64,000 bases of DNA, taken from Guillardia theta CCMP2712. Taxonomy: Eukaryota; Protista; Cryptophyta. Shown here one piece after another: positions 2,911 through 54,025 of the stretch; the first letter of the stretch is position 1, and each line of letters opens with the position of its first letter. Location: contig NW_005434590.1 in NCBI RefSeq assembly GCF_000315625.1, positions 293,793 through 357,792 on the forward strand, given 5' to 3'. Made by a program: the position numbers and the translations under genes. Under the pieces are notes generated by a model. The model was given only the letters and a program-made list of their open reading frames with translations, did no database searches and had not been told where the DNA came from.

Positions 2911-2981
2911 GCTCAAACCGGCGTTAGCAAGGATGAGCCGGGGAGGCGTGTGGTAGGCGAGGCAAAGATCCGACAAGAAGC

Positions 2982-11299: not shown

Positions 11300-11420
11300 T
11301 TCATACAGTTTTTTTGAAAGCATGCTATATTTTACTATTTGTTCTCATTTTTTGTGTTTTGCCATAAAAAATGATATAAAGATTTCAGCCATAAAATTAT
11401 CTAACCTAAGAATAAAGGCA

Positions 11421-29390: not shown

Positions 29391-30745
29391 CGGCTGGTCG
29401 TCAAGGGGCTGGGAAGATAATCAGGCTGATATCTGCAGGATGAGATCGACATGCTGTGGAACAGACTTGCAGGGGTAGTGTGTAGAGGTTGAAAGGCAAC
29501 CTAGTTGATCACTTTCATGTTGTACTTGATCAACCGTGTCATGATGGGAGGTGGTGCAACGTGTAATACGCTCATACAACTACTTGCGCTTACTTGATTT
29601 CCAAGTGTTTCCATCGCCATGTGCAACTTTCAAAAGCCATCACGATGCGATTTCCTCTGATCTCCTTGTTGAAGCAAGGTGAAGTAATGAAGAAAACAGT
29701 TCTTGAAGCTTTCTGCAGTGTCCAAAAAGGTTGCCTTGACCTATTTACCTGTCTCACTCTTCAAAACAAGGTGATTTTGTGTGTGTGAGGGCTCAGTCTC
29801 AAATGCTTGGCAGCAGCCTGAAGCAGCATTTTACTCGCTTCCTTGCCCATAATGTTGAAGCAGATGTAGCAACTTCAAAACCGGTCCATCATCTTCACAA
29901 CCAGTCCATCACATTTGCATCCTCATGGTGTCTGGTGCCTCCTGGCACACAGTTCCTTCAGAGGGCGTGAGCAACTATAGGAGGGGACCATCGACGACTA
30001 CAACGTTGCATGTCATCATCCAACACTGCAACCATCTGTCTTCAACTGCCCCTCAACATCAGATGCGGGACTAAAGAGTGCAGAGTGCAACCATGCAGCT
30101 TACAGGTTACATGGGTCTCCTCGTTGCATCATTCGATAACTAAGAGCGACTCATGACTCTCTGCTGCATCCCGTCGCCATCTCACTCCGCCATGGCTGAG
30201 GTCTAGCAACAAGCAGCTCTTGCCCATGCCATGATCTTGTCAGCGATGAAAGCCATCAACGATGACGCATGAGGGACCTGAAGAGTAAAAGTATCACGCT
30301 CATCAGCTACACGTTCTGATCATACGAGCATTCGTCTCTCCTCTACTTGTAACATACATGTTGCTACCCAGCTTCAAGTCCACAACCTCCGTCGACCCTC
30401 GCGGCGCGCCATTCGGAGATGGCTCAAGTACCCTACCCCCTCTGACGACCCCTAGCGAGTACCGAATACCCCCTCGTGGGTGCGCTGGATGGCAGAGCAG
30501 GTCGGCAAGGCTGACAAGGAGCCGCTTGCTGAGGTCAAGATGCGCAGCCCGCAGAGAGAAGCAAGAGGGAGAGGAGCGAGGGCTATGGGCAGGGCTGTAG
30601 GCTTGATAGGCTTGAGCTCCATCATCATCTCGAGCGCGGTGGTGAGGAGCGACCTGAGGGTTGGAGGGAAGGTTTTTCTGAGCTGTGCTTGTAACAGGGA
30701 GCGTCATTTCCATGTCCTGGGCGATGTGCTGACTACAATCTGAGG

Positions 30746-32638
30746 ATGGCTTTGGGGGGAAGCTGCTTGCGCATACGAGGAGGGGATGCTAGGGAGGGAG
30801 GACGAGGTAATATCTCGAGTGGAGTCAAGGAAAGAAACAAAGGGGCGGGCAAGAGGCGGCGGGTGTGCTACTCTGGAATGAATGTGAGTAGGCAGTCTGC
30901 CGAGACTGAGGTAGAAGGAGAGGTCAAGCCTGTAGGAACAGGTATCAAGGGGGTAGAAGCAAAGATGGACCTTGTGGAAAAAAACATCCAGGATGTACTG
31001 CATGAGATCAGATATGAACAGGATCCCACGATGAAGACCGCCCTTGTCAGGAGACTCGAGCAACTTGGAGAAAAAGAACTTATCCTTTTGAGACAGAGCA
31101 CCGGACCCCATGTGCCACCGATTGCTTGGAACGAGTCAGATGCAAGACTGGATCGGATGGGCTTTTGCAACGACGACAAGTACTTTCGTCTCGATGCATC
31201 CTACCTACAAAGAGACGGAGAGCTCCTTCTCTACTGCCGGGAAGCTTTCAAGAGTCAGCTCTGCTTCTTGAGGGAGAAGGTGGTGGAGCAGCGAGCTTTT
31301 GGCTGGATCAAAGGCCCGCCGGGAACGGGGAAGACGACGACGACGCTAGCCTTCTGCTTGTCTCTTGACATGAGGGAATGGAGCGTAACGCTCATCAGGC
31401 TGCATATATCCGACGACGTTGATTGCATCCGAATCGTCGGTGGTAGGAGGAGATGGTGCAGGATTCCCAAGCGCTCCTCATGGGAAGGGATCAACAGAAT
31501 GCTGGAAGAATGGCAGGACTACAAGAAGGGTTTGGTGGTCCTGGACGGGTTCTTGAGGCATGAGTCACACCACGTAGACTTTTTGGACGCATGTAGGAAA
31601 TGGCTGCTAGCTGATCGAGAGAATCGACGGGTTGTAGTAGCGACATCGATGTCTTCTCGAGGAAAGTCACGACTAGAAGATGACAATCGGGTGAATCTCC
31701 AACAACACACCGTTGTATCTTGGACGGAGAGAGAGTACCTGAAAGCAGTGGAGTGGGACGTTTTCTATCAGCGTGTAGCATGCATGCTGGAGGAGGATGA
31801 AAGTGCGGCGAGCATGGGCTTGAAGACATGGAAGAAGAACAGGTCTAGACGAGAGAAGATCAAGCTGAAATACTACCTGGCTGGCGGCTCATGTCGGTTC
31901 ATGTTCGAGACGCCCGCATCATTGGTGAAAGAGAGGCTGGATGAAGCTTTGAGTTTCTGTTCAAACCTAGAAGTCGTCTTCAGTGGCATCGTGGGCGACT
32001 CATCACCGCAGGCGGTAAACCACTTGATTGCGTGCTTCAAGTACAACGGGGAATCGAACTGGATGCCTGTGAGCAAGTATGTCGCGACGAAGCTTGCAGA
32101 AGCGGCAGAACTAGACACGCTGAAGAGGCTGTTCTCAAGGTACGGGGCAAGCAATCCGACTACAAGGGGCTTGCTTTTCGAGCTTTTCTTTTTCAAGAAG
32201 ATCAAGCTCGGGCTGAGCCTGAGGTATCGGGGATCTCAAGAGGTCAGGCAATGGGAGGGATGTCCAGTCATCACCTTTGATGCAAAGGGAGGCATGCAAA
32301 CGCTTCCTGCAGAGAGAACTTGCTTGAAGCCCGTCAACCCCCTTCAAGGAGGCTACGACGCTATCATAGTAGAGCCTCGCGGGAAGTTAGTAGAGTTTGT
32401 GCAGGTGACAGAGGCAGACGTCCACTCTTTCAAGCTGGCTTTCTTCGCAGAGGCTCTCACGGGGCTAGGCATCCCAGCAGCTGGATGGAAGGTGAGGGTG
32501 GTGTTCATGGTGCCGCAAGACAGGCTCGAGAGCTTTCGGATAGGCAAAATCAAGGGCTGCGGTGCGCTGGAGGAGTACGGATGGAAGGGAGGGCAGGAAG
32601 AAAGGCAGGCAGAGGTAGCGGGTATGGATATCGCGTGA
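30746..32638 (+). CDS. Crinkler/RHS-like P-loop NTPase + PD-(D/E)xK-fold endonuclease (true start uncertain)
   Basis: Walker A GPPGTGKT, Walker B VVLDG, AGGSCR, G.LFE, QGGYDA...FVQVT...H: CR-NTPase + CR-REase pattern. Confidence 0.85.
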   Translation: MALGGSCLRIRGGDAREGGRGNISSGVKERNKGAGKRRRVCYSGMNVSRQSAETEVEGEVKPVGTGIKGVEAKMDLVEKNIQDVLHEIRYEQDPTMKTALVRRLEQLGEKELILLRQSTGPHVPPIAWNESDARLDRMGFCNDDKYFRLDASYLQRDGELLLYCREAFKSQLCFLREKVVEQRAFGWIKGPPGTGKTTTTLAFCLSLDMREWSVTLIRLHISDDVDCIRIVGGRRRWCRIPKRSSWEGINRMLEEWQDYKKGLVVLDGFLRHESHHVDFLDACRKWLLADRENRRVVVATSMSSRGKSRLEDDNRVNLQQHTVVSWTEREYLKAVEWDVFYQRVACMLEEDESAASMGLKTWKKNRSRREKIKLKYYLAGGSCRFMFETPASLVKERLDEALSFCSNLEVVFSGIVGDSSPQAVNHLIACFKYNGESNWMPVSKYVATKLAEAAELDTLKRLFSRYGASNPTTRGLLFELFFFKKIKLGLSLRYRGSQEVRQWEGCPVITFDAKGGMQTLPAERTCLKPVNPLQGGYDAIIVEPRGKLVEFVQVTEADVHSFKLAFFAEALTGLGIPAAGWKVRVVFMVPQDRLESFRIGKIKGCGALEEYGWKGGQEERQAEVAGMDIA

Positions 32639-34019
32639 GCTCAAACCGGCGTTAGCAAGGATGAGCCGGGGAGGCGTGTGGTAGGCGAGGCAAAGATCCG
32701 ACAAGAAGCGGCGGCTGGTCGTCAAGGGGCTGGGAAGACGATCAGGCTGATATCTGCAGGATGAGATCGACATGCTGTGGAACAGACTTGCAGGGGTAGT
32801 GTGTAGAGGTTGAAAGGCAACCTAGTTGATCACTTTCATGTTGTACTTGATCAACCGTGTCATGATGGGAGGTAGTGCAACGTGTAATACGCTCATACAA
32901 CTACTTGCGCTTACTTGATTTCCAAGTGTTTCCATCGCCATGTGCAACTTTCAAAAGCCATCACGATGCGATTTCCTCTGATCTCCTTGTTGAAGCAAGG
33001 TGAAGTAATGAAGAAAGAAGCTTTCTGCAGTGTCCAAAAAGGTTGCCTTGACCTATTTACCTGTCTCACTCTTCTTCAAAACAAGGTGATTGTGTGTGTG
33101 AGGGCTCAGTCTCAAATGCTTGGCAGCAGCCTGAAGCAGCATTTTACTCGCTTCCTTGCCCATAATGTTGAAGCAGATGTAGCAACTTCAAAACCAGTCC
33201 ATCATCTTCAATACCGGTCCATCATCTTCAAAACCAGTCCATCACATTTGCATCCTCATGGTGTCTGGTGCCTCCTGGCACACAGTTCCTTAAGAGGGCG
33301 TGAGCAACTATAGGAGGGGACCATCGACGACCACAACGTTGCATGTCATCATCCAACACTGCAACCATCTGTCTTCATCTGCCCCTCAACATCAGATGCG
33401 GGACTAAAGAGTGCAGAGTCCAACCATGCAGCTTACAGGTTACATGGGTCTCCTCGTTGCATCATTTGATAACTAAGAGCGACTCATGACTCTCTGCTGC
33501 ATCCCGTCGCCATCTCACTCCGCCATGGCTGAGGTCTAGCAACAAGCAGCTCTTGCCCATGCCATGATCTTGTCAGCGATGAAAGCCATCAACGATGACG
33601 CATGAGGGACCTGAAGAGTAAAAGTATCACGCTCATCAGCTACACGTTCTGATCATACGAGCATTCGTCTCTCCTTTGCTTGTAACATACATGGCTCAAG
33701 TACCCTACCCCCTCTGACGACCCCTAGCGAGTACCGAATACCCCCTCGCGGGTGTGCTGGATGGCAGAGCAGGAGTCGGCAAGGCTGACAAGGAGCCGCT
33801 TGCTGAGGTCAAGATGCGCAGCCCGCAGAGAGAAGCAAGAGGGAGAGGAGCGAGGGCTATGGGCAGGGCTGTAGGCTTGATAGGCTTGAGCTCCATCATC
33901 ATCTCGAGCGCGGTGGTGAGGAGCGACCTGAGGGTTGGAGGGAAGGTTTTTCTGAGCTGTGCTTGTAACAGGGAGCGTCATTTCCATGTCCTGGGCGATG
34001 TGCTGACTACAATCTGAGG

Positions 34020-35954
34020 ATGGCTTTGGGGGGAAGCTGCTTGCGCATACGAGGAGGGGATGCTAGGGAGGGAGGACGAGGTAATATCTCGAGTGGAGTC
34101 AAGGAAAGAAACAAAGGGGCGAGCAAGAGGCGGCGGGTGTGCTACTCTGGAATGAATGTGAGTAGGCAGTCTGCCGAGACTGAGGTAGAAGGAGAGATCG
34201 AGCTTGTGGAAGCAGATATCAAGGGGGTAGAAGCGAAGATGAAGCTTGTGGAAAAAAACATCCAGGATGTACTGCATGAGATCAGATATGAACAGGATCC
34301 CACGATGAAAACCGCCCTTGTCAGGAGACTCGAGCAACTTGGAGAAGACAAGAAGCAGCTTGGAGAAGAAAAGAAGCAGCTTGGAGAAAAAGAACTTATC
34401 CTTTTGAGACAGAGCACCGGACCCCATGTGCCACCGATTGCTTGGAACGAGTCAGATGCAAGACTGGATCGGATGGGCTTTTGCAACGACGACAAGTACT
34501 TTCGTCTCGATGCATCCTACCTACAAAGAGACGGAGAGCTCCTTCTCTACTGCCGGGAAGCTTTCAAGAGTCAGCTCTGCTTCTTGAGGGAGAAGGTGGT
34601 GGAGCAGCGAGCTTTTGGCTGGATCAAAGGCCCGCCGGGAACGGGGAAGACGACGACGACGCTAGCCTTCTGCTTGTCTCTTGACATGAGGGAATGGAGC
34701 GTAACGCTCATCAGGCTGCATATATCCGACGACGTTGATTGCATCCGAATCGTCGGTGGTAAGAGGAGATGGTGCAGGATTCCCAAGCGCTCCTCATGGG
34801 AAGGGATCAACAGAATGCTGGAAGAATGGCAGGACTACAAGAAGGGTTTGGTGGTCCTGGACGGGTTCTTGAGGCATGAGTCACACCACGTAGACTTTTT
34901 GGACGCATGTAGGAAATGGCTGCTAGCTGATCGAGAGAATCGACGGGTTGTAGTAGCGACATCGATGTCTTCTCGAGGAAAGAAGAATGACCCTGAAGAC
35001 GATGAAGTGAATCTCCAACAACACACCGTTGTATCTTGGACGGAGAGAGAGTACCTGAAAGCAGTGGAGTGGGACGTTTTCTATCAGCGTGTAGCATGCA
35101 TGCTGGAGGAGGATGAAAGTGCGGCGAGCATGGGCTTGAAGACATGGAAGAGGAACAGGTCTAGACGAGAGAAGATCAAGCTGAAATACTACCTGGCAGG
35201 CGGCTCATGTCGGTACATGTTCGAGACGCCCGCATCATTGGTGAAAGAGAGGCTGGATGAAGCTTTGAGTTTCTGTTCAAACCTAGAAGTCGTCTTCAGT
35301 GGCATCGTGGGCGACTCATCACCGCAGGCGGTAAACCACTTGATTGCGTGCTTCAAGTACAACGGGGAATCGAACTGGATGCCTGTGAGCAAGTATGTCG
35401 CGACGAAGCTTGCAGAAGCGGCAGAACTAGACACGCTGAAGAGGCTGTTCTCAAGGTACGGGGCAAGCAATCCGACTACAAGGGGCCATCTTTTCGAGCT
35501 TTTCTTTTTCAAGAAGATCAAGTGCGGGCTGAGCCTGAGGTATCGGGGATCTCAAGAGCTCACGCAATGGGAGGGATGTCCAGTCATCACCTTTGATGCA
35601 AAGGGAGGCATGCAAACGCTTCCTGCAGAGAGAACTTGCTTGAAGCCCGTCAACCCCCTTCAAGGAGGCTACGACGCTATCATAGTAGAGCCTCGCGGGA
35701 AGTTAGTAGAGTTTGTGCAGGTGACAGAGGCAGACGTCCACTCTTTCAAGCTGGCTTTCTTCGCAGAGGCTCTCATGGGGCTAGGCATCCCAGCAGCTGG
35801 ATGGAAGGTGAGGGTGGTGTTCATAGTGCCGCGAGACAGGCTCGAGAGCTTTCGGATAGGCAAAATCAAGGGCTGCGGTGCGCTGGAGGAGTACGGATGG
35901 AAGCGAGGGCAGGAAGAAAGGCAGGCAGAGGTAGCGGGTATGAATATCGCGTGA
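34020..35954 (+). CDS. Crinkler/RHS-like NTPase-REase paralogue
   Basis: Near-identical to 30746..32638. Confidence 0.85.
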   Translation: MALGGSCLRIRGGDAREGGRGNISSGVKERNKGASKRRRVCYSGMNVSRQSAETEVEGEIELVEADIKGVEAKMKLVEKNIQDVLHEIRYEQDPTMKTALVRRLEQLGEDKKQLGEEKKQLGEKELILLRQSTGPHVPPIAWNESDARLDRMGFCNDDKYFRLDASYLQRDGELLLYCREAFKSQLCFLREKVVEQRAFGWIKGPPGTGKTTTTLAFCLSLDMREWSVTLIRLHISDDVDCIRIVGGKRRWCRIPKRSSWEGINRMLEEWQDYKKGLVVLDGFLRHESHHVDFLDACRKWLLADRENRRVVVATSMSSRGKKNDPEDDEVNLQQHTVVSWTEREYLKAVEWDVFYQRVACMLEEDESAASMGLKTWKRNRSRREKIKLKYYLAGGSCRYMFETPASLVKERLDEALSFCSNLEVVFSGIVGDSSPQAVNHLIACFKYNGESNWMPVSKYVATKLAEAAELDTLKRLFSRYGASNPTTRGHLFELFFFKKIKCGLSLRYRGSQELTQWEGCPVITFDAKGGMQTLPAERTCLKPVNPLQGGYDAIIVEPRGKLVEFVQVTEADVHSFKLAFFAEALMGLGIPAAGWKVRVVFIVPRDRLESFRIGKIKGCGALEEYGWKRGQEERQAEVAGMNIA

Positions 35955-37075
35955 GCTCAAACCGGCGTTAGCAAGGATGAGCCGGGGAGGCGTGTGGTAG
36001 GCGAGGCAAAGATCCGACAAGAAGCGGCGGCTGGTCGTCAAGGGGCTGGGAAGACGATCAGGCTGATATCTGCAGGATGAGATCGACATGCTGTGGAACA
36101 GACTTGCAGGGGTAGTGTGTAGAGGTTGAAAGGCAACCTAGTTGATCACTTTCATGTTGTACTTGATCAACCGTGTCATGATGGGAGGTGGTGCAACGTG
36201 TAATACGCTCATACAACTACTTGCGCTTACTTGATTTCCAAGTGTTTCCATCGCCATGTGCAACTTTCAAAAGCCATCACGATGCGATTTCCTCTGATCT
36301 CCTTGTTGAAGCAAGGTGAAGTAATGAAGAAAGAAGCTTTCTGCAGTGTCCAAAAAGGTTGCCTTGACCTATTTACCTGTCTCACTCTTCAAAACAAGGT
36401 GATTGTGTGTGTGAGTGGGCTCAGTCTCAAATGCTTGGCAGCAGCCTGAAGCAGCATTTTACTCGCTTCCTTGCCCATAATGTTGAAGCAGATGTAAAAA
36501 CTTCAAAACCAGTCCATCATCTTCAAAACCAGTTCATCACATTTGCATCCTCATGGTGTCTGGTGCCTCCTGGCACACAGTTCCTTCAGAGGGCGTGAGC
36601 AACTATAGGAGGGGACCATCGACGACTACAACGTTGCATGTCATCTCTCAATCCGATCCGAACCTCCCCGCTTTCCTCTCATTGCAATTCATTGCCGACT
36701 GCAGAAGAGCTTTCAGGAGCAGCTGCATCTCCAAATAAACACATGTCTTGCCTTGCCTCTTTCATTTCTTTCATCACACTTGTATCATCACAACATAGTC
36801 TTGTTGTATGATTTGCTCTGACTCTTGTGTGTTGGGAACACGGTCCTCGACTTCTACGCTGGGAGCGCCGTTCTGGTACCGCGATCGTGTTCAAGTGTCC
36901 TGGTTCTCGCCGTGCGCTTCATCCACGAGTCATTGTATCAGTTGTGATCAGAAGCGTACAGTGTGGGTAGAGGAGAGGAGGTAGAGGAGAGGATGTGTGT
37001 GTGGAAGCAAGTAGAGGAGAGTAGGAGGTAGAGGAGATAATGTAGGTGAAACATATGTTTCCTTGATCAACATTC

Positions 37076-38338
37076 TCACTCCACAGTTATAAATCTTGCA
37101 ACAAGGCTGCAGCATTTTGTCGTTCTTTCCCTATTCCCATCTGAAGACTCGATCGAGTCTTGTGTGTGATCCGGTTTAACTGTCGTCCTATCCTTCTCCG
37201 GGTGCAACTCATTGCAAAACGTGATGTAACTCAGCTGTACCCTTCCATCGATGTTTCTGACCCGCTCTTGATACCAATACGTCATCATGTTCCTGACTGA
37301 TACTTTCTGTGGCCAATCGAAATCTGTAGCAACCATTTAGCGCTCTCCCCCCCCATTCGAACCAATCGCCCTCTACCTGGTCATCATTCAATGATTGTTC
37401 TTCACTATTCGACGACACATCTTCTTCCATGTCTGATCCTGATCTTGCTTCCGAGCTGTATATTTCCGAAAGCATTTTATTGTCTTGTGTTCATTCCCCC
37501 CATACACACCTCTGTTCGACCCAACTTCCGTCTCGCTCAGAATTGTTTGAATCCAAGGCAGATACCATGGTTTCATTTGGAGCCTCAGGTTCATTCACAA
37601 CGGCAAAGTTCATCCCTGTAATCCTTCTCATTTGCATCAACCAGGTGTGAACATTTCTGTTTCATGTTCTCCTCTCTGCTATGCAGCTTCATCCAAAATC
37701 TCGTGAAACCTTGCCGTGTTTGTTTTGGGTTCTTCTTCAGTGTCTTGTTCATTGTGAACATGCCTTCAATCTTGGATACTTTCGTCACCAGCTCCTTGAT
37801 AGTATGAATGATATCCGTCATTCTTGGAGCCCCATGTGCGAGCATGCCACACTCTTGGCAACTGTGAACCTTCAATACTACTTTGTAACCTAGCTGATTC
37901 AATCTACTCATCGTGTCGTCCAAACATGCCAAATAGCGGAATTTCCCATATGGAGTGCTGTGGATCAGGGAACCATGCTTGCAGAGTGGGACGATGATAC
38001 AAAATACTAGCCAGAAAGAAAGGAATACAATTTCTGTACCCCGCGGCAGTTCAATGAAACTCTTGATGAATTTGTCCCATCCTATTGCTTGTAACTCTCG
38101 CATCCCTTCGGGAGAAAAATCTGGTGGTAGCACAGCAAATTTGGCCGTGCTAGGATCGTTCCCTGCCAAACGTCTGCCACACATCTGATCGCCCCCTGCT
38201 CCTCCCACGATGTACCGGTCTTCTGTGTCACCTGTCAACCACAATAGTCAGCATAGTGCCAAGGAGAGCATCACATTCATGGATGACCTATCCTCCGGTT
38301 GGCTCGAATGCAAACAGTAGGCACTCCTGCATTGTATG
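37076..38338 (-). pseudogene. Degenerate Crypton-like tyrosine recombinase, 3' part
   Basis: With a GT..AG intron at about 38233-38290 it reads VCIRANRRIGDTEDRYIVGGAGGDQMCGRRLAG...FAVLPPDF, the Crypton C-terminal signature; DFDWP...WY further downstream; multiple frameshifts. Confidence 0.72.
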
Positions 38339-39226
38339 TATGCAGCCTGATGAGCGTTACGCTCCATCCCTCATGTCAAGAGACAAGCAAAAGCCTAGCG
38401 TCAGCCCAGGCGGAGTGAGATGGCGACGAGATGCAGAAGAGGGTCATGAGTCGCTCTTAGTTATCGAATGATGCAACGAGGAGACCCATGTAACCTGTAA
38501 GCTGCATGGTTGGACTCTGCACTCTTTAGTCCCGCATCTGATGTTGAGGGGCAGATGAAGACAGATGGTTGCAGTGTTGGATGATGACATGCAACGTTGT
38601 GGTCGTCGATGGTCCCCTCCTCACCATGAGGATGCAAATGTGATGGACTGGTTTTGAAGATGATGGGCTGGTTTTGAAGTTGCTACATCTGCTTCAACAT
38701 TATGGGCAAGGAAGCGAGTAAAATGCTGCTTCAGGCTGCTGCCAAGCATTTGAGACTGAGCCCTCACACACACAATCACCTTGTTTTGAAGAAGAGTGAG
38801 ACAGGTAAATAGGTCAAGGCAACCTTTTTGGACACTGCAGAAAGCTTCTTTCTTCATTACTTCACCTTGCTTCAACATGGAGATCAGAGGAAATCGCATC
38901 GTGATGGCTTTTGAAAGTTGCACATGGCGATGGAAACACTTGGAAATCAAGTAAGCGCAAGTAGTTGTATGAGCGTATTACACGTTGCACCACCTCCCAT
39001 CATGACACGGTTGATCAAGTACAACATGAAAGTGATCAACTAGGTTGCCTTTCAACCTCTACACACTACCCCTGCAAGTCTGTTCCACAGCATGTCGATC
39101 TCATCCTGCAGATATCAGCCTGATCGTCTTCCCAGCCCCTTGACGACCAGCCGCCGCTTCTTGTCGGATCTTTGCCTCGCCTACCACACGCCTCCCCGGC
39201 TCATCCTTGCTAACGCCGGTTTGAGC

Positions 39227-41119: not shown

Positions 41120-42500
41120 CCTCAGATTGTAGTCAGCACATCGCCCAGGACATGGAAATGACGCTCCCTGTTACAAGCACAGCTCAGAAAAACCTTCCCT
41201 CCAACCCTCAGGTCGCTCCTCACCACCGCGCTCGAGATGATGATGGAGCTCAAGCCTATCAAGCCTACAGCCCTGCCCATAGCCCTCGCTCCTCTCCCTC
41301 TTGCTTCTCTCTGCGGGCTGCGCATCTTGACCTCAGCAAGCGGCTCCTTGTCAGCCTTGCCGACTCCTGCTCTGCCATCCAGCGCACCCGCGAGGGGGTA
41401 TTCGGTACTCGCTAGGGGTCGTCAGAGGGGGTAGGGTACTTGAGCCATGTATGTTACAAGTAGAGGAGAGACGAATGCTCGTATGATCAGAACGTGTAGC
41501 TGATGAGCGTGATACTTTTACTCTTCAGGTCCCTCATGCGTCATCGTTGATGGCTTTCATCGCTGACAAGATCATAGCATGGGCAAGAGCTGCTTGTTGC
41601 TAGACCTCAGCCATGGCGGAGTGAGATGGCGACGGGATGCAGCAGAGAGTCATGAGTCGCTCTTAGTTATCGAATGATGCAACGAGGAGACCCATGTAAC
41701 CTGTAAGCTGCATGGTTGGACTCTGCACTCTTTAGTCCCGCATCTGATGTTGAGGGGCAGATGAAGACAGATGGTTGCAGTGTTGGATGATGACATGCAG
41801 TGTTGGATGATGACATGCAACGTTGTGGTCGTCGATGGTCCCCTCCTATAGTTGCTCACGCCCTCTGAAAGAACACACCATGAGGATGCAAATGTGATGG
41901 ACCGGTTTTGAAGATGATGGACCGGTATTGAAGATGATGGACTGGTTTTGAAGTTGCTACATCTGCTTCAACATTATGGGCAAGGAAGCGAGTAAAATGC
42001 TGCTTCAGGCTGCTGCCAAGCATTTGAGACTGAGCCCTCACACACACAATCACCTTGTTTTGAAGAAGAGTGAGACAGGTAAATAGGTCAAGGCAACCTT
42101 TTTGGACACTGCAGAAAGCTTCTTTCTTCATTACTTCACCTTGCTTCAACAAGGAGATCAGAGGAAATCGCATCGTGATGGCTTTTGAAAGTTGCACATG
42201 GCGATGGAAACACTTGGAAATCAAGTAAGCGCAAGTAGTTGTATGAGCGTATTACACGTTGCACCACCTCCCATCATGACACGGTTGATCAAGTACAACA
42301 TGAAAGTGATCAACTAGGTTGCCTTTCAACCTCTACACACTACCCCTGCAAGTCTGTTCCACAGCATGTCGATCTCATCCTGCAGATATCAGCCTGATCG
42401 TCTTCCCAGCCCCTTGACGACCAGCCGCCGCTTCTTGTCGGATCTTTGCCTCGCCTACCACACGCCTCCCCGGCTCATCCTTGCTAACGCCGGTTTGAGC

Positions 42501-44414
42501 TCACGCGATATCCATACCCGCTACCTCTGCCTGCCTCCCTTCCTGCCCTCCCTTCCATCCGTACTCCTCCAGCGCACCGCAGCCCTTGATTTTGCCTATC
42601 CGAAAGCTCTCGAGCCTGTCTCGCGGCACCATGAACACCACCCTCACCTTCCATCCAGCTGCTGGGATGCCTAGCCCCGTGAGAGCCTCTGCGAAGAAAG
42701 CCAGCTTGAAAGAGTGGACGTCTGCCTCTGTCACCTGCACAAACTCTACTAACTTCCCGCGAGGCTCTACTATGATAGCGTCGTAGCCTCCTTGAAGGGG
42801 GTTGACGGGCTTCAAGCAAGTTCTCTCTGCAGGAAGCGTTTGCATGCCTCCCTTTGCATCAAAGGTGATGACTGGACATCCCTCCCATTGCGTGAGCTCT
42901 TGAGATCCCCGATACCTCAGGCTCAGCCCGCACTTGATCTTCTTGAAAAAGAAAAGCTCGAAAAGATGGCCCCTTGTAGTCGGATTGCTTGCCCCGTACC
43001 TTGAGAACAGCCTCTTCAGCGTGTCTAGTTCTGCCGCTTCTGCAAGCTTCGTCGCGACATACTTGCTCACAGGCATCCAGTTCGATTCCCCGTTGTACTT
43101 GAAGCACGCAATCAAGTGGTTTACCGCCTGCGGTGATGAGTCGCCCACGATGCCACTGAAGACGACTTCTAGGTTTGAACAGAAACTCAAAGCTTCATCC
43201 AGCCTCTCTTTCACCAATGATGCGGGCGTCTCGAACATGTACCGACATGAGCCGCCTGCCAGGTAGTATTTCAGCTTGATCTTCTCTCGTCTAGACCTGT
43301 TCCTCTTCCATGTCTTCAAGCCCATGCTCGCCGCACTTTCATCCTCCTCCAGCATGCATGCTACACGCTGATAGAAAACGTCCCACTCCACTGCTTCCAG
43401 GTACTCTCTCTCCGTCCAAGATACAACGGTGTGTTGTTGGAGATTCACTTCATCGTCTTCAGGGTCATTCTTCTTTCCTCGAGAAGACATCGATGTCGCT
43501 ACTACAACCCGTCGATTCTCTCGATCAGCTAGCAGCCATTTCCTACATGCGTCCAAAAAGTCTACGTGGTGTGACTCATGCCTCAAGAACCCGTCCAGGA
43601 CCACCAAACCCTTCTTGTAGTCCTGCCATTCTTCCAGCATTCTGTTGATCCCTTCCCATGAGGAGCGCTTGGGAATCCTGCACCATCTCCTCCTACCACC
43701 GACGATTCGGATGCAATCAACGTCGTTGGATATATGCAGCCTGATGAGCGTTACGCTCCATTCCCTCATGTCAAGAGACAAGCAGAAGGCTAGCGTCGTC
43801 GTCGTCTTCCCCGTTCCCGGCGGGCCTTTGATCCAGCCAAAAGCTCGCTGCTCCACCACCTTCTCCCTCAAGAAGCAGAGCTGACTCTTGAAAGCTTCCC
43901 GGCAGTAGAGAAGGAGCTCTCCGTCTCTTTGTAGGTAGGATGCATCGAGACGAAAGTACTTGTCGTCGTTGCAAAAGCCCATCCGATCCAGTCTTGCATC
44001 TGACTCGTTCCAAGCAATCGGTGGCACATGGGGTCCGGTGCTCTGTCTCAAAAGGATAAGTTCTTTTTCTCCAAGCTGCTTCTTGTCTTCTCCAAGTTGC
44101 TCGAGTCTCCTGACAAGGGCGGTCTTCATCGTGGGATCCTGTTCATATCTGATCTCATGCAGTACATCCTGGATGTTTTTTTCCACAAGCTTCATCTTTG
44201 CTTCTACCCCCTTGATATCTGCTTCCACAAGCTCGATCTCTCCTTCTACCTCAGTCTCGGCAGACTGCCTACTCACATTCATTCCAGAGTAGCACACCCG
44301 CCGCCTCTTGCTCGCCCCTTTGTTTCTTTCCTTGACTCCACTCGAGATATTACCTCGTCCTCCCTCCCTAGCATCCCCTCCTCGTATGCGCAAGCAGCTT
44401 CCCCCCAAAGCCAT
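42501..44414 (-). CDS. Crinkler/RHS-like NTPase-REase paralogue
   Basis: Same motifs. Confidence 0.85.
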   Translation of the reverse strand: MALGGSCLRIRGGDAREGGRGNISSGVKERNKGASKRRRVCYSGMNVSRQSAETEVEGEIELVEADIKGVEAKMKLVEKNIQDVLHEIRYEQDPTMKTALVRRLEQLGEDKKQLGEKELILLRQSTGPHVPPIAWNESDARLDRMGFCNDDKYFRLDASYLQRDGELLLYCREAFKSQLCFLREKVVEQRAFGWIKGPPGTGKTTTTLAFCLSLDMREWSVTLIRLHISNDVDCIRIVGGRRRWCRIPKRSSWEGINRMLEEWQDYKKGLVVLDGFLRHESHHVDFLDACRKWLLADRENRRVVVATSMSSRGKKNDPEDDEVNLQQHTVVSWTEREYLEAVEWDVFYQRVACMLEEDESAASMGLKTWKRNRSRREKIKLKYYLAGGSCRYMFETPASLVKERLDEALSFCSNLEVVFSGIVGDSSPQAVNHLIACFKYNGESNWMPVSKYVATKLAEAAELDTLKRLFSRYGASNPTTRGHLFELFFFKKIKCGLSLRYRGSQELTQWEGCPVITFDAKGGMQTLPAERTCLKPVNPLQGGYDAIIVEPRGKLVEFVQVTEADVHSFKLAFFAEALTGLGIPAAGWKVRVVFMVPRDRLESFRIGKIKGCGALEEYGWKGGQEGRQAEVAGMDIA

Positions 44415-45834
44415 CCTCAGATTGTAGTCAGCACATCGCCCAGGACATGGAAATGACGCTCCCTGTTACAAGCACAGCTCAGAAAAACCTTCCCTCCAAC
44501 CCTCAGGTCGCTCCTCACCACCGCGCTCGAGATGATGATGGAGCTCAAGCCTATCAAGCCTACAGCCCTGCCCATAGCCCTCGCTCCTCTCCCTCTTGCT
44601 TCTCTCTGCGGGCTGCGCATCTTGACCTCAGCAAGCGGCTCCTTGTCAGCCTTGCCGACCTGCTCTGCCATCCAGCGCACCCGCGAGGGGGTATTCGGTA
44701 CTCGCTAGGGGTCGTCAGAGGGGGTAGGGTACTTGAGCCATCTCCGTATGGCGCGCCGCGAGGGTCGACGGAGGTTGTGGACTTGAAGCTGGGTAGCAAC
44801 ATTTATGTTACAAGTAGAGGAGAGACGAATGCTCGTATGATCAGAACGTGTAGCTGATGAGCGTGATACTTTTACTCTTCAGGTCCCTCATGCGTCATCG
44901 TTGATGGCTTTCATCGCTGACAAGATCATAGCATGGGCAAGAGCTGCTTGTTGCTAGACCTCAGCCATGGCGGAGTGAGATGGCGACGGGATGCAGCAGA
45001 GAGTCATGAGTCGCTCTTAGTTATCGAATGATGCAACGAGGAGACCCATGTAACCTGTAAGCTGCATGGTTGGACTCTGCACTCTTTAGTCCCGCATCTG
45101 ATGTTGAGGGGCAGATGAAGACAGATGGTTGCAGTGTTGGATGATGACATGCAACGTTGTGGTCGTCGATGGTCCCCTCCTATAGTTGCTCACGCCCTCT
45201 GAAAGAACTGTGTGCCAGGAGGCACCAGACACCATGAGGATTCAAATGTTATGGACTGGTTTTGAAGATGATGGACCGGTTTTGAAGTTGCTACATCTGC
45301 TTCAACATTATGGGCAAGGAAGCGAGTAAAATGCTGCTTCAGGCTGCTGCCAAGCATTTGAGACTGAGCCCTCACACACACAATCACCTTGTTTTGAAGA
45401 AGAGTGAGACAGGTAAATAGGTCAAGGCAACCTTTTTGGACACTGCAGAAAGCTTCTTTCTTCATTACTTCACCTTGCTTCAACAAGGAGATCAGAGGAA
45501 ATCGCATCGTGATGGCTTTTGAAAGTTGCACATGGCGATGGAAACACTTGGAAATCAAGTAAGCGCAAGTAGTTGTATGAGCGTATTACACGTTGCACTA
45601 CCTCCCATCATGACACGGTTGATCAAGTACAACATGAAAGTGATCAACTAGGTTGCCTTTCAACCTCTACACACGACCCCTGCAAGTCTGTTCCACAGCA
45701 TGTCGATCTCATCCTGCAGATATCAGCCTGATCGTCTTCCCAGCCCCTTGACGACCAGCCGCCGCTTCTTGTCGGATCTTTGCCTCGCCTACCACACGCC
45801 TCCCCGGCTCATCCTTGCTAACGCCGGTTTGAGC

Positions 45835-47769
45835 TCACGCGATATCCATACCCGCTACCTCTGCCTGCCTCCCTTCCTGCCCTCCCTTCCATCCGTACTT
45901 CTCCAGCGCACCGCAGCCCTTGATTTTGCCTATCCGAAAGCTCTCGAGCCTGTCTCGCGGCACCATGAACACCACCCTCACCTTCCATCCAGCTGCTGGG
46001 ATGCCTAGCCCCGTGAGAGCCTCTGCGAAGAAAGCCAGCTTGAAAGAGTGGACGTCTGCCTCTGTCACCTGCACAAACTCTACTAACTTCCCGCGAGGCT
46101 CTACTATGATAGCGTCGTAGCCTCCTTGAAGGGGGTTGACGGGCTTCAAGCAAGTTCTCTCTGCAGGAAGCGTTTGCATGCCTCCCTTTGCATCAAAGGT
46201 GATGACTGGACATCCCTCCCATTGCGTGAGCTCTTGAGATCCCCGATACCTCAGGCTCAGCCCGCACTTGATCTTCTTGAAAAAGAAAAGCTCGAAAAGA
46301 TGGCCCCTTGTAGTCGGATTGCTTGCCCCGTACCTTGAGAACAGCCTCTTCAGCGTGTCTAGTTCTGCCGCTTCTGCAAGCTTCGTCGCGACATACTTGC
46401 TCACAGGCATCCAGTTCAATTCCCCGTTGTACTTGAAGCACGCAATCAAGTGGTTTACCGCCTGCGGTGATGAGTCGCCCACGATGCCACTGAAGACGAC
46501 TTCTAGGTTTGAACAGAAACTCAAAGCTTCATCCAGCCTCTCTTTCACCAATGATGCGGGCGTCTCGAACATGTACCGACATGAGCCGCCTGCCAGGTAG
46601 TATTTCAGCTTGATCTTCTCTCGTCTAGACCTGTTCCTCTTCCATGTCTTCAAGCCCATGCTCGCCGCACTTTCATCCTCCTCCAGCATGCATGCTACAC
46701 GCTGATAGAAAACGTCCCACTCCACTGCTTCCAGGTACTCTCTCTCCGTCCAAGATACAACGGTGTGTTGTTGGAGATTCACCCGATTGTCATCTTCTAG
46801 TCGTGACTTTCCTCGAGAAGACATCGATGTCGCTACTACAACCCGTCGATTCTCTCGATCAGCTAGCAGCCATTTCCTACATGCGTCCAAAAAGTCTACG
46901 TGGTGTGACTCATGCCTCAAGAACCCGTCCAGGACCACCAAACCCTTCTTGTAGTCCTGCCATTCTTCCAGCATTCTGTTGATCCCTTCCCATGAGGAGC
47001 GCTTGGGAATCCTGCACCATCTCCTCCTACCACCGACGATTCGGATGCAATCAACGTCGTTGGATATATGCAGCCTGATGAGCGTTACGCTCCATTCCCT
47101 CATGTCAAGAGACAAGCAGAAGGCTAGCGTCGTCGTCGTCTTCCCCGTTCCCGGCGGGCCTTTGATCCAGCCAAAAGCTCGCTGCTCCACCACCTTCTCC
47201 CTCAAGAAGCAGAGCTGACTCTTGAAAGCTTCCCGGCAGTAGAGAAGGAGCTCTCCGTCTCTTTGTAGGTAGGATGCATCGAGACGAAAGTACTTGTCGT
47301 CGTTGCAAAAGCCCATCCGATCCAGTCTTGCATCTGACTCGTTCCAAGCAATCGGTGGCACATGGGGTCCGGTGCTCTGTCTCAAAAGGATAAGTTCTTT
47401 TTCTCCAAGCTGCTTCTTTTCTTCTCCAAGCTGCTTCTTGTCTTCTCCAAGTTGCTCGAGTCTCCTGACAAGGGCGGTCTTCATCGTGGGATCCTGTTCA
47501 TATCTGATCTCATGCAGTACATCCTGGATGTTTTTTTCCACAAGCTTCATCTTCGCTTCTACCCCCTTGATATCTGCTTCCACAAGCTCGATCTCTCCTT
47601 CTACCTCAGTCTCGGCAGACTTCCTACTCACATTCATTCCAGAGTAGCACACCCGCCGCCTCTTGCTCGCCCCTTTGTTTCTTTCCTTGACTCCACTCGA
47701 GATATTACCTCGTCCTCCCTCCCTAGCATCCCCTCCTCGTATGCGCAAGCAGCTTCCCCCCAAAGCCAT
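45835..47769 (-). CDS. Crinkler/RHS-like NTPase-REase paralogue
   Basis: Same motifs. Confidence 0.85.
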   Translation of the reverse strand: MALGGSCLRIRGGDAREGGRGNISSGVKERNKGASKRRRVCYSGMNVSRKSAETEVEGEIELVEADIKGVEAKMKLVEKNIQDVLHEIRYEQDPTMKTALVRRLEQLGEDKKQLGEEKKQLGEKELILLRQSTGPHVPPIAWNESDARLDRMGFCNDDKYFRLDASYLQRDGELLLYCREAFKSQLCFLREKVVEQRAFGWIKGPPGTGKTTTTLAFCLSLDMREWSVTLIRLHISNDVDCIRIVGGRRRWCRIPKRSSWEGINRMLEEWQDYKKGLVVLDGFLRHESHHVDFLDACRKWLLADRENRRVVVATSMSSRGKSRLEDDNRVNLQQHTVVSWTEREYLEAVEWDVFYQRVACMLEEDESAASMGLKTWKRNRSRREKIKLKYYLAGGSCRYMFETPASLVKERLDEALSFCSNLEVVFSGIVGDSSPQAVNHLIACFKYNGELNWMPVSKYVATKLAEAAELDTLKRLFSRYGASNPTTRGHLFELFFFKKIKCGLSLRYRGSQELTQWEGCPVITFDAKGGMQTLPAERTCLKPVNPLQGGYDAIIVEPRGKLVEFVQVTEADVHSFKLAFFAEALTGLGIPAAGWKVRVVFMVPRDRLESFRIGKIKGCGALEKYGWKGGQEGRQAEVAGMDIA

Positions 47770-49187
47770 CCTCAGATTGTAGTCAGCACATCGCCCAGGA
47801 CATGGAAATGACGCTCCCTGTTACAAGCACAGCTCAGAAAAACCTTCCCTCCAACCCTCAGGTCGCTCCTCACCACCGCGCTCGAGATGATGATGGAGCT
47901 CAAGCCTATCAAGCCTACAGCCCTGCCCATAGCCCTCGCTCCTCTCCCTCTTGCTTCTCTCTGCGGGCTGCGCATCTTGACCTCAGCAAGCGGCTCCTTG
48001 TCAGCCTTGCCGACCTGCTCTGCCATCCAGCGCACCCGCGAGGGGGTATTCGGTACTCGCTAGGGGTCGTCAGAGGGGGTAGGGTACTTGAGCCATCTCC
48101 GTATGGCGCGCCGCGAGGGTCGACGGAGGTTGTGGACTTGAAGCTGGGTAGCAACATGTATGTTACAAGTAGAGGAGAGACGAATGCTCGTATGATCAGA
48201 ACGTGTAGCTGATGAGCGTGATACTTTTACTCTTCAGGTCCCTCATGCGTCATCGTTGATGGCTTTCATCGCTGACAAGATCATAGCATGGGCAAGAGCT
48301 GCTTGTTGCTAGACCTCAGCCATGGCGGAGTGAGATGGCGACGGGATGCAGCAGAGAGTCATGAGTCGCTCTTAGTTATCGAATGATGCAACGAGGAGAC
48401 CCATGTAACCTGTAAGCTGCATGGTTGGACTCTGCACTCTTTAGTCCCGCATCTGATGTTGAGGGGCAGATGAAGACAGATGGTTGCAGTGTTGGATGAT
48501 GACATGCAACGTTGTGGTCGTCGATGGTCCCCTCCTCACCATGAGGATGCAAATGTGATGGTTTGGTTGTGAAGATGATGGACTGGTTGAGGATTCAAAT
48601 GTTATGGACCGGTATTGAAGATGATGGACCGGTTTTGAAGTTGCTACATCTGCTTCAACATTATGGGCAAGGAAGCGAGTAAAATGCTGCTTCAGGCTGC
48701 TGCCAAGCATTTGAGACTGAGCCCTCACACACACAATCACCTTGTTTTGAAGAAGAGTGAGACAGGTAAATAGGTCAAGGCAACCTTTTTGGACACTGCA
48801 GAAAGCTTCTTTCTTCATTACTTCACCTTGCTTCAACAAGGAGATCAGAGGAAATCGCATCGTGATGGCTTTTGAAAGTTGCACATGGCGATGGAAACAC
48901 TTGGAAATCAAGTAAGCGCAAGTAGTTGTATGAGCGTATTACACGTTGCACTACCTCCCATCATGACACGGTTGATCAAGTACAACATGAAAGTGATCAA
49001 CTAGGTTGCCTTTCAACCTCTACACACTACCCCTGCAAGTCTGTTCCACAGCATGTCGATCTCATCCTGCAGATATCAGCCTGATCGTCTTCCCAGCCCC
49101 TTGACGACCAGCCGCCGCTTCTTGTCGGATCTTTGCCTCGCCTACCACACGCCTCCCCGGCTCATCCTTGCTAACGCCGGTTTGAGC

Positions 49188-51100
49188 TCACGCGATATCC
49201 ATACCCGCTACCTCTGCCTGCCTCCCTTCCTGCCCTCCCTTCCATCCGTACTTCTCCAGCGCACCGCAGCCCTTGATTTTGCCTATCCGAAAGCTCTCGA
49301 GCCTGTCTCGCGGCACTATGAACACCACCCTCACCTTCCATCCAGCTGCTGGGATGCCTAGCCCCGTGAGAGCCTCTGCGAAGAAAGCCAGCTTGAAAGA
49401 GTGGACGTCTGCCTCTGTCACCTGCACAAACTCTACTAACTTCCCGCGAGGCTCTACTATGATAGCGTCGTAGCCTCCTTGAAGGGGGTGACGGGCTTCA
49501 AGCAAGTTCTCTCTGCAGGAAGCGTTTGCATGCCTCCCTTTGCATCAAAGGTGATGACTGGACATCCCTCCCATTGCGTGAGCTCTTGAGATCCCCGATA
49601 CCTCAGGCTCAGCCCGCACTTGATCTTCTTGAAAAAGAAAAGCTCGAAAAGATGGCCCCTTGTAGTCGGATTGCTTGCCCCGTACCTTGAGAACAGCCTC
49701 TTCAGCGTGTCTAGTTCTGCCGCTTCTGCAAGCTTCGTCGCGACATACTTGCTCACAGGCATCCAGTTCAATTCCCCGTTGTACTTGAAGCACGCAATCA
49801 AGTGGTTTACCGCCTGCGGTGATGAGTCGCCCACGATGCCACTGAAGACGACTTCTAGGTTTGAACAGAAACTCAAAGCTTCATCCAGCCTCTCTTTCAC
49901 CAATGATGCGGGCGTCTCGAGCATGTACCGACATGAGCCGCCAGCCAGGTAGTATTTCAGCTTGATCTTCTCTCGTCTAGACCTGTTCCTCTTCCATGTC
50001 TTCAAGCCCATGCTCGCCGCACTTTCATCCTCCTCCAGCATGCATGCTACACGCTGATAGAAAACGTCCCACTCCACTGCTTCCAGGTACTCTCTCTCCG
50101 TCCAAGATACAACGGTGTGTTGTTGGAGATTCACCCGATTGTCATCTTCTAGTCGTGACTTTCCTCGAGAAGACATCGATGTCGCTACTACAACCCGTCG
50201 ATTCTCTCGATCAGCTAGCAGCCATTTCCTACATGCGTCCAAAAAGTCTACGTGGTGTGACTCATGCCTCAAGAACCCGTCCAGGACCACCAAACCCTTC
50301 TTGTAGTCCTGCCATTCTTCCAGCATTCTGTTGATCCCTTCCCATGAGGAGCGCTTGGGAATCCTGCACCATCTCCTCCTACCACCGACGATTCGGATGC
50401 AATCAACGTCGTCGGATATATGCAGCCTGATGAGCGTTACGCTCCATTCCCTCATGTCAAGAGACAAGCAGAAGGCTAGCGTCGTCGTCGTCTTCCCCGT
50501 TCCCGGCGGGCCTTTGATCCAGCCAAAAGCTCGCTGCTCCACCACCTTCTCCCTCAAGAAGCAGAGCTGACTCTTGAAAGCTTCCCGGCAGTAGAGAAGG
50601 AGCTCTCCGTCTCTTTGTAGGTAGGATGCATCGAGACGAAAGTACTTGTCGTCGTTGCAAAAGCCCATCCGATCCAGTCTTGCATCTGACTCGTTCCAAG
50701 CAATCGGTGGCACATGGGGTCCGGTGCTCTGTCTCAAAAGGATAAGTTCTTTTTCTCCAAGCTGCTTCTTGTCTTCTCCAAGTTGCTCGAGTCTCCTGAC
50801 AAGGGCGGTCTTCATCGTGGGATCCTGTTCATATCTGATCTCATGCAGTACATCCTGGATGTTTTTTTCCACAAGGTCCATCTTCGCTTCTACCCCCTTG
50901 ATATCTGCTTCCACAAGCTCGATCTCTCCTTCTACCTCAGTCTCGGCAGACTGCCTACTCACATTCATTCCAGAGTAGCACACCCGCCGCCTCTTGCTCG
51001 CCCCTTTGTTTCTTTCCTTGACTCCACTCGAGATATTACCTCGTCCTCCCTCCCTAGCATCCCCTCCTCGTATGCGCAAGCAGCTTCCCCCCAAAGCCAT
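49188..51100 (-). pseudogene. Crinkler/RHS-like paralogue with a 1-bp deletion at about 49488
   Basis: ggggtgacg versus ggggttgacg in other copies splits the ORF just before QGGYDA; could be a sequencing error. Confidence 0.8.
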
Positions 51101-52611
51101 CCTCAGATTGTAGTCAGCACATCGCCCAGGACATGGAAATGACGCTCCCTGTTACAAGCACAGCTCAGAAAAACCTTCCCTCCAACCCTCAGGTCGCTCC
51201 TCACCACCGCGCTCGAGATGATGATGGAGCTCAAGCCTATCAAGCCTACAGCCCTGCCCATAGCCCTCGCTCCTCTCCCTCTTGCTTCTCTCTGCGGGCT
51301 GCGCATCTTGACCTCAGCAAGCGGCTCCTTGTCAGCCTTGCCGACTCCTGCTCTGCCATCCAGCACACCCGCGAGGGGGTATTCGGTACTCGCTAGGGGT
51401 CGTCAGAGGGGGTAGGGTACTTGAGCCATGTATGTTACAAGTAGAGGAGAGACGAATGCTCGTATGATCAGAACGTGTAGCTGATGAGCGTGATACTTTT
51501 ACTCTTCAGGTCCCTCATGCGTCATCGTTGATGGCTTTCATCGCTGACAAGATCATAGCATGGACAAGATCTGCTTGTCGCTAGACCTCAGCCATGGCGG
51601 AGTGAGATGGCGACGGGATGCAGCAGAGAGTCATGAGTCGCTCTTAGTTATCACATGATGCAACGAGGAGACCCATGTAACCTGTAAGCTGCATGGTTGG
51701 ACTCTGCACTCTTTAGTCCCGCATCTGATGTTGAGGGGCAGATGAAGACAGATGGTTGCAGTGTTGGATGAGAGAGAAATGAGTCAGCGATAGTTTCCTG
51801 ATGCTGGTCTTATGATGGCAGATAGCGAGACGCGAGAGGAGCCACGACCCCGCCAACTTCCAACAAATGGAAAACTAACTTCTTGTCGTCATTTTCGAAC
51901 ATAGTGCTACCCATTTCAACTGGACTTCTTGGCCAGAGGAGCCTCGCGAGATTACCTAGGGAGTTACTTAGGCTCTAACTCAACTGCTACCCCCAGGTGC
52001 TATTTGAGATCTACTGTCTACAGCTGACTGCAGGTGCTCTTGAGCTCGATTTCCACTTGAATCCAAGTACAGTTGGCGTCCACACCTAGTCTGAGGGTTC
52101 TTGGCAGGAATCATAACGGAACCGTTCCAGGTCTGGAGCTTCTCAGAGCAGTGCTTGCTGTGATTGGCTGACAGGTCACAGAGCAGAGGAACATTCCACT
52201 TCGAACAGTCGCCTCTAGAAGCGATACTAGCTGTTGCGAAGAGCTTGAAGCTACAGGGTAGCCTGTAGATGGATCGAAGATCAAGAGCCGCGGTGTTTTC
52301 GTTTGATCTGTACTGCCTGACTCTGTGAGCACTGTTGTCCTCCCAGCAAAAGAGTGCGGCTGTCGGAGCGACGAGACAGATGCAAGAGATGAAGAAAGAG
52401 AGAGCTTGAAACTCGTGGGGAGAGCTTATGGCTATCCAAGGGAACATGTCAACTGCAAGGAGACCATGAAACTGTGACCGTTGAAGAGCGAGGCCGCGGC
52501 CATGCCTGAGCCGTGATGCGGTACACTGCTTGAAGGCTGGAAAAGGAGTAGAGTAGCACCATCATGAGTCCAAGAGTCTGTTGCACCAACATGAAGTATG
52601 CAAAAGCTGGC

Positions 52612-53880: not shown

Positions 53881-53908
53881 CTTTTTCCAATATTTGATCA
53901 GGCTGAAC

Positions 53909-54025
53909 GCGGAAAGGAGGAGGGCGGGAAGGAGGAGGGCGGGAAGGAGGAGGGCGGGAAGGAGGAGGGCGGGAAGGAGGAGGGCGGGAAGGAGGAGGGC
54001 GGGAAGGAGGAGGGCGGGAAGGAGG
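53909..54025. repeat. 15-bp minisatellite (GCGGGAAGGAGGAGG)n, about 7.5 copies
   Basis: Direct inspection. Confidence 0.95.

Follow-up and report, generated by a model that had tools for sequence, protein, structure and literature searches.

The locus considered here is a tandem array of a 3.3-kb gene cassette in the cryptophyte alga Guillardia theta CCMP2712 (contig C84:293793-357792). The whole 64,000-nt stretch of DNA analyzed is referred to as the window, and its position 1 corresponds to C84:293793. The cassette is made up of a promoter region, a two-exon gene, a 3' untranslated region, and a poly(A) site. It is present in seven head-to-tail copies, 98.2-99.5% identical to each other, which probably represent one insertion of a complete and expressed unit. 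The last of these copies, U7 (window 33349-36645, 3297 bp), served as the reference repeat unit. It includes a 2-nt TC common to both ends, and the true unit period is ~3295 bp once this shared dinucleotide is discounted. The 87-Mb G. theta assembly was scanned for further copies of the unit and for its termini.

The array is divided into two inverted arms, and in gene orientation its parts follow the order A flank, U1, U2, U3, U4, head of U5, break, rest of U5, U6, U7, and B flank. The plus-strand arm comprises the middle part of U5 at 1963-2981 (unit positions 1659-2677, the C-terminal half of the gene), the tail of U5 at 29387-30017 (unit positions 2676-3297), from which the middle part was severed by a virus-like insertion, U6 at 30016-33350, and U7, which contains an open reading frame (ORF) for 644 aa at 34020-35954 and ends in GCATGTCA(TC). 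U6 carries the annotated gene GUITHDRAFT_115440, also on the plus strand (exon 1, 30489-30641; intron, 56 bp; exon 2, 30698-32638). The minus-strand arm comprises U1, the first unit of the insertion, at 48498-51771 (with a shortened ORF of 547 aa at 49457-51100), U2 at 45143-48499 (ORF 45835-47769), U3 at 41809-45144 (ORF 42501-44414), U4 at 38583-41790 (ORF 39227-41119, unit positions 3211-3258 deleted), and the head of U5 at 38336-38584, in which unit positions 1-184 are joined to 1310-1377, the interval 185-1309 being deleted, and the unit breaks off at 1377. A first-pass annotation of the window, made from the sequence alone, had given the array a span of 30016-51777. The plus arm begins earlier, with the two U5 pieces from 1963 onward, and the minus arm, rather than stopping where a unit ends, continues down to 38336 through the deleted and broken unit. 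The U3/U4 junction is crossed on the minus strand by a 20-bp tandem duplication at 41791-41810, which is exact, as had been annotated (Tandem Repeats Finder: 41776-41819, period 20, 100% matches). Because it sits between two TGCA direct repeats, this duplication looks like the result of simple slippage. A 20-bp minisatellite (CTTCAAAACCAGTCCATCAT) is located at the poly(A) site (window 36501-36539, unit positions 3153-3191) in two to three copies per unit, and the same minisatellite has grown to ~15 or more copies at C56:66650-66948.

The internal junction between units, GCATGTCA followed directly by TCATCCAACAC, is present at seven places in the window. The plus arm terminates with GCATGTCA at 36643 and is followed by TCTCTC (36644-36649), and the minus arm opens with TCATCC at 51771, which on that strand directly follows TCTCTC (51772-51777). 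Junction, ends, and flanking hexamers all lie where the first-pass annotation had placed them. The outer ends of the array correspond to unit position 1 (start) and unit position 3297 (end), which are adjacent positions of the repeat unit. By our own estimate (1/3297 per base), the ends of a random array fragment would be in phase to within a few bases in ~1 of 1000 cases. A collapsed or mis-joined repeat in the Sanger-era assembly, a reading to which the 98-99% identity of the units and their palindromic structure would lend some color, is barely plausible: contigs from the independent runs X1 and X2 span the boundary between the last unit and the B flank (36645/36646) without differences, an X2 contig passes from the A flank AGGAAACTATCGCTGACTCATTTCTCTC straight into the unit start, and the read depth of the unit is ~5- to 10-fold that of the flank, a ratio compatible with about seven copies. 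Since independent runs bridge the boundaries and the depth fits, the junctions and array ends are genuine and not an assembly artifact.

For the empty-site search, the genome was queried with each flank separately, and the obtained hits are paralogues, not alleles. The A flank (51772-52617, minus strand) is a low-copy non-coding repeat with paralogues in contigs C118 (six copies), C47, C146, and C36, and the first ~220 bp of the B flank (36646-36965, plus strand) are homologous to the sequence directly after the A-flank homologue in C118, C47, and C146. Homology to the last 46 bp of the A flank (93-98% identity) passes directly into homology to the initial 50-200 bp of the B flank (72-83% identity) in C47 and in the six tandem copies of C118; in C146, A-like and B-like sequences lie in the same orientation, 165 bp apart. 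The flanks adjoin directly at these three paralogous loci and are collinear on both sides, and therefore the A and B flanks of the window, now 15 kb apart and inverted, were formerly contiguous. The array is evidently a single insertion of exactly seven units, the halves of which were later parted by an inversion. The first-pass annotation had named ordinary unequal crossing-over as its alternative, with the TCTCTC match as a low-complexity coincidence. In such an in-situ history, a resident single-copy gene would have been duplicated in tandem at (TC)n microhomologies. Any in-situ tandem duplication would put the outer ends in phase with the internal junction, and the junction indeed has TC in common with both flanks. 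We consider this history very unlikely, however, because the flanks meet without an intervening gene at the three paralogous loci, so that the gene was not resident at the site, and because the junction sequence is found in much older copies elsewhere, so that it was not made in the window array. The target repeat is itself arrayed six times on C118:56799-75117, with a period of ~3.7 kb.

The same paralogous sites bear on the origin of the two hexamers. The sites, for which a search had been suggested in the first-pass annotation, are contiguous as it foresaw, but they already contain a 12-nt pyrimidine tract (TCCCTTTCTCTC), and its alignment to the two flanking hexamers is ungapped. The paralogues read CATT-TCCCTT-TCTCTC-AATCC and the window minus the array reads CATT-TCTCTC-TCTCTC-AATCC, with equal length and two transitions, so the pattern of the array-free site is ...CATTTC(C/T)CT(T/C)TCTCTCAATCC.... 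A target-site duplication of 4-6 bp, which had been proposed to explain the repeated TCTCTC, is contradicted by this ungapped alignment, in which a 6-nt shift matches 8-10 of 25 positions on the B side, compared to 15-20 of 25 at zero shift. Because of the ungapped alignment and the poor fit of the shift, the two hexamers are evidently the left half (A side, 51772-51777, minus strand) and the right half (B side, 36644-36649, plus strand) of the pre-existing tract, with no target-site duplication. The block was inserted between two nucleotides of the tract, within the low-copy non-coding repeat, and target bases were neither gained nor lost.

Exact-pattern scans of the assembly revealed exactly one unit start without a preceding unit end and exactly one unit end without a following unit start, both of them in the window. 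In all other copies (C143, C56, C19, C193 with three repeats and a partial one, the diverged C80, and a local duplicate at C84:285408-286558), the junction is contiguous. The contiguous junction GCATGTCATCATCC is found in the C143, C56, C19, C193, and C80 copies, which are 69-95% identical to the reference unit piece by piece, compared to 98-99% among the array units, and for this reason the tandem or circular arrangement evidently predates the window array. The other copies have sharp breaks elsewhere, at unit positions 419/310 (C143), 1400/1605 (C56), and 3014/184 (C19), and no flanking repeats were found at the ends of these three copies. The C143 copy is permuted (419..3297,1..310), is 108 bp short of one unit, and continues into an inverted scrap of positions 362-392 from the missing interval; no empty site was found for it in the genome, where its flanks have no paralogue. 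The C56 copy is also permuted (1400..3297,1..1605) and corresponds to one unit plus 205 bp. The C193 arrays are scrambled by a 36-bp satellite, and their ends are not definable. More distant paralogues (~70% DNA identity) match within the coding region only. Crinkler-type clusters are present in this genome on C13, C17, C19, C28, and C193. The spacer of a Crinkler-type array on C17 has no DNA in common with the window unit and gave a weak protein-level match to the window fragment 36966-38335. The metagenome contigs with relatives of the unit (L050 and L051) showed no terminal overlap indicating a circle or an array.

Several further observations concern these copies. Unit position 184, directly after CCATGGCTGA, is the breakpoint in two independent events, namely the internal deletion of U5 (38401/38402) and the end of the C19 fragment (C19:735849). 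A ~45-bp motif (core CTACTGATTTTTAACTTAAC), with ~594 copies genome-wide or one per 147 kb, flanks the permuted C143 copy in inverted orientation (C143:62735-62777 and 66485-66526). It also lies near other Crinkler-type copies (C56:64808-64826, C193:33440-33469, and C80:284605-284749) and near a Crypton-like element (C48:356716-356744). The motif occurs near Crinkler-type copies more often than predicted, and a miniature inverted-repeat transposable element end, an insertion hot spot, or a regulatory element are candidates for its nature. Contigs from run X6, a freshwater metagenome of 2023, match the locus of this marine alga at 95-100%, B flank included, which may reflect contamination, a prey culture, or a close relative.

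The annotated gene of the cassette starts ~470 bp after the unit start and has kept its 56-bp intron. RNA reads accumulate on the sense strand past the stop codon, and four of them end in poly(A) near 36511; thus, the junction lies ~130 bp past the transcript end, in a short untranscribed spacer. The 644-aa product is predicted to contain a long coiled coil (residues 46-132 in the model), an AAA+ domain, and a C-terminal domain of 175 aa. The GPPGTGKT (Walker A) and LDG (Walker B) motifs are invariant among 11 paralogues, and the AAA+ domain resembles RFC/ORC-type AAA+ proteins by fold and profile matches; the AAA/STAND matches in Pfam were below threshold only. The C-terminal domain was modeled with a predicted local distance difference test score of 91. 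Its best structural neighbors are nearly all PD-(D/E)xK nucleases (McrC, BspD6I, Card1, FokI, and SdaI), although at Z-scores of only 5-6 and Foldseek E-values of at least 0.025, and it has a conserved D...QxT...H..K pattern rather than the canonical PD-(D/E)xK motif. Residue 552 of the protein is a conserved aspartate.

The first-pass annotation had described the product as a Crinkler/RHS-like nucleoside triphosphatase-restriction endonuclease (NTPase-REase). The NTPase core and the homology to header-bearing proteins hold, but the Crinkler/RHS header is absent: no match to PF20147, PF07999, or PF20445 was found in the protein by Pfam, and the coiled coil occupies that place. The REase fold is putative, given its modest Z-scores. 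Among the 10 long matches from a profile search that returned 1832 cluster representatives, two carry the PF20147 Crinkler domain above the cut-off (P0043, E 1e-89; P0118, E 4e-59), and the nearest Atlas clusters are named Crinkler or RHSP/RHS (scores of 0.93-0.98). Because these two profile relatives carry the Crinkler header and the Atlas clusters are so named, homology places the core of the protein, but not its header, in the Crinkler-RHS type. The G. theta family occupies at least 55 loci with 31-100% identity, and 67 of the 72 matches have no stop codon. As the loci are mostly intact, divergent, and share the coding region only, the family looks like a selected host gene family, rather than decaying transposon copies. 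The protein is most likely an ATP-dependent nuclease of conflict or immunity and not the enzyme that moved the block.

These results allow the mobility of the unit to be assessed. The first-pass annotation regarded the unit as a discrete transposon, present as a head-to-tail concatemer with defined ends. A discrete insertion with whole-number ends is retained from this proposal, but the termini are unique in the assembly and the tabulated ends of other copies fall at differing unit positions, an outcome that the annotation itself had named as speaking against a transposon. A mobile element with specific ends would exist as a circle or multimer that is cut at GTCA/TCATCC and inserted into pyrimidine tracts by its own ATPase-nuclease or by a Crypton tyrosine recombinase acting in trans. 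Such an element would fit the base precision on both donor and target and the in-phase ends. The array has a Crypton-like fragment 320 bp away, and a descent of the Crinkler-RHS NTPase and REase core from prokaryotic transposons has been proposed, as far as this is summarized in PMC5289972, which cites Zhang et al. (2016). We nevertheless find a mobile element improbable. Its termini would occur once in 87 Mb, and in at least eight other copies the junction is uninterrupted and the ends fall at other positions. The insertion shows no target-site duplication, and the two unit ends have neither a terminal inverted repeat (none on inspection, in agreement with the annotation) nor a hairpin (none beyond chance by folding, z about 0). 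The family consists of mostly intact paralogues of 31-58% identity with only the coding sequence in common, the crossover core would be just 2 nt (TC), and the unit is without a recombinase. It is similarly doubtful that the cassette is a self-propagating element of a kind not yet described, with no terminal repeats, target-site duplication, or conventional transposase. Such an element would persist as head-to-tail arrays, leave as circles, and return with base precision to pyrimidine tracts, using its own AAA+/REase-fold protein or hijacked Crypton recombinases of the genome.

Known element classes were compared with the unit as well. A retrocopy or long terminal repeat (LTR) element was rejected, given the retained 56-bp intron and a unit that extends ~130 bp beyond the poly(A) site and lacks an A-tail. 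A cut-and-paste transposon was rejected, given the lack of target-site duplication, reused termini, inverted repeats, and transposase, the sole gene being the AAA+/REase-fold gene. Helitrons, terminal-inverted-repeat transposons, retrocopies, and Cryptons are all excluded because each fails a tested defining feature.

We estimate a probability of roughly 60% for a passive, repair-mediated insertion of a circle-derived cassette from an older array. The donor would be a DNA circle released from an older tandem array of the 3.3-kb unit, or a concatemer made from one. A single opening within the short untranscribed spacer would have linearized it, and host repair would have sealed it into a chromosome break. 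It may have been a multimer on arrival, or a monomer that out-of-register recombination expanded afterward. A circle-type donor is favored because one opening of a circle or concatemer gives adjacent-base ends by construction, and the locus has the feature of a circle-derived insertion in that, relative to the empty site, both ends are adjacent in the source sequence. Each step has precedents, as circles looped from tandem arrays (PMC6890164), re-insertion of cut circles (PMC7188851), and integration of circles to form tandem arrays (PMC4352087) are documented. The circular or rolling-circle intermediate suggested in the first-pass annotation accords with the in-phase ends, which are as expected from a linearized circle or a rolling-circle concatemer.

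Several points weigh against a circle-derived insertion. No physical circle was observed, and in short reads and contigs a circle junction looks the same as an array junction. The join is unusually clean for end joining, since donor and target lose no base, whereas 108 bp are missing from the C143 copy. Testable flanks exist for one insertion only, and the random opening of circles rests on copies of less certain history. The C56 copy exceeds one unit by 205 bp, which is unexpected from a plain monomer circle, and the left inversion junction lacks the other half of a broken Crypton-like element (see below). A related possibility, which we hold unlikely, is that several units were copied from an array elsewhere to repair a break in the pyrimidine tract, through break-induced or microhomology-mediated replication and with no free circle. 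Such templated repair is in keeping with the TC microhomology at both joins and with the messy scraps at the left inversion junction and in the C143 copy, which show template switching in this family. Entry and exit at the same unit base are unexpected in this case, unless the template was circular, and templated repair from a circular template merges with the favored explanation.

The array and its surroundings have been rearranged after the insertion. One arm breaks off at unit position 1377 and the other at 1659. A 36-bp scrap of the interval missing between these positions (unit positions 1551-1586) sits on the minus strand at the left inversion junction, J1 (window 1909-1944). As the arm ends and the scrap all fall in one unit, the two arms are two parts of one break in U5. 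The inversion would have had one break in unit 5 and the other in the neighboring Crypton-like element, giving the two inverted arms; a 26-kb polinton-like virus would have entered unit 5, and a ~1.15-kb piece of the inversion junction would have been copied to a position ~52 kb upstream. The corresponding duplicate (C84:285408-286558, ~8 kb upstream of the window) is a 1153-bp copy of window 38184-39327 with 96.7% identity, and it was made after the inversion, since it contains the right inversion junction, J2. The Crypton-like element at 36966-38335 (minus strand) is a 5'-truncated copy of a ~3.6-kb family with further members at C48:353040-356620 and on C103, and it ends at J2, where the window copy was cut. 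A simple two-break inversion was rejected: it predicts the rest of this element at J1, and none was detected in window 1-2000 or in the 18 kb upstream. Therefore, either the rearrangement took a more complex course, or a deletion or transposon insertion came after it. The two frames of the Crypton-like element give a weak Phage_int_SAM_4 match, and the nearest Atlas cluster carries GCR1_C/NDC10_II. A search of the genome with the tyrosine recombinase family PF00589 of Pfam gave no match and did not locate Cryptons.

The virus-like insertion occupies 26.4 kb (window 2982-29386) in U5 at unit position 2676/2677, and the other six units serve as built-in empty-site controls for it. It has ~580-bp inverted repeats (3558-4136 and 27984-28555, 91% identity) and encodes a PriCT-2/D5-type primase-helicase (11250-13745), a lectin-fold protein of 1025 aa (16353-19430), a Zot-like ATPase (20330-21241), and a GIY-YIG nuclease (28638-29141). 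The insertion looks like a polinton-like virus, and such viruses have been reported for cryptophytes (PMC12220804). Inside it are two 928-bp direct repeats (6152-7079 and 8757-9684) that are 100% identical and 2.6 kb apart and look like a young LTR-type insertion. High-copy repeats are present at window 1-1690 (at least 12 copies, 94-96% identity; the first ~600 bp are more abundant and LTR-like) and at window 52618-54035 (at least 10 copies, 87-94% identity).

The locus is a natural and unusually well documented example of an entire gene array placed at a non-homologous site with base precision and with paralogous empty sites, and it also records an inversion, a virus-like integration with six empty-site controls, and a Crypton-like neighbor. 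It shows how a conflict- or immunity-type family of Crinkler-RHS-like ATPase-nucleases can spread as DNA in a protist genome without a dedicated transposase. If the unit were a mobile element after all, Crinkler-type genes would be tied directly to mobility, so far an evolutionary inference only, and the locus would directly document the transposon ancestry that has been proposed for Crinkler-RHS effectors.

Among known systems, Helitrons resemble the unit in the lack of target-site duplications, the occurrence in tandem arrays, and a start with TC. A Helitron was rejected, since the 5'-TC alone is present: the 3' end is GTCA rather than CTRR, the host bases are C and T rather than A and T, and there is neither a 3' hairpin nor a Rep/helicase. 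Cryptons share with the unit the lack of terminal inverted repeats and target-site duplications and a circular intermediate (for the unit, an inferred one), but the unit encodes no recombinase, its shared core is 2 nt, and its ends are not reused elsewhere in the genome. Crinkler-RHS proteins have the same P-loop NTPase in their core, next to a restriction-endonuclease fold that is putative in the G. theta protein, and CRN genes of Phytophthora infestans lie in perfect tail-to-head arrays resembling Helitron arrangements (PMC5289972), comparable to the head-to-tail order seen here. In contrast to Crinkler-RHS effectors, the G. theta protein has a coiled coil in place of the header and no secretion signal, its host is a free-living alga, and Helitron features are absent. 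Circles of yeast XylA (PMC4352087) and CUP1 (PMC6890164) likewise turn a gene-sized circle into a head-to-tail chromosomal array; however, the yeast arrays re-form at the homologous locus under selection, whereas the G. theta array occupies a non-homologous site. Extrachromosomal circular DNA that is cut and re-integrated can give rise to an insertion-based duplication (Takahashi & Innan, 2020; PMC7188851), which likewise is a copy at a new site, in circularly permuted order and with ends that are adjacent in the source. The G. theta case differs in that its source is itself a tandem gene array, its insert comprises a multimer of seven units, and its join is precise to the base. The closest known counterparts of the locus are this type of insertion duplication and the head-to-tail CRN arrays of P. 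infestans, and the array belongs with them rather than in a new class of element.

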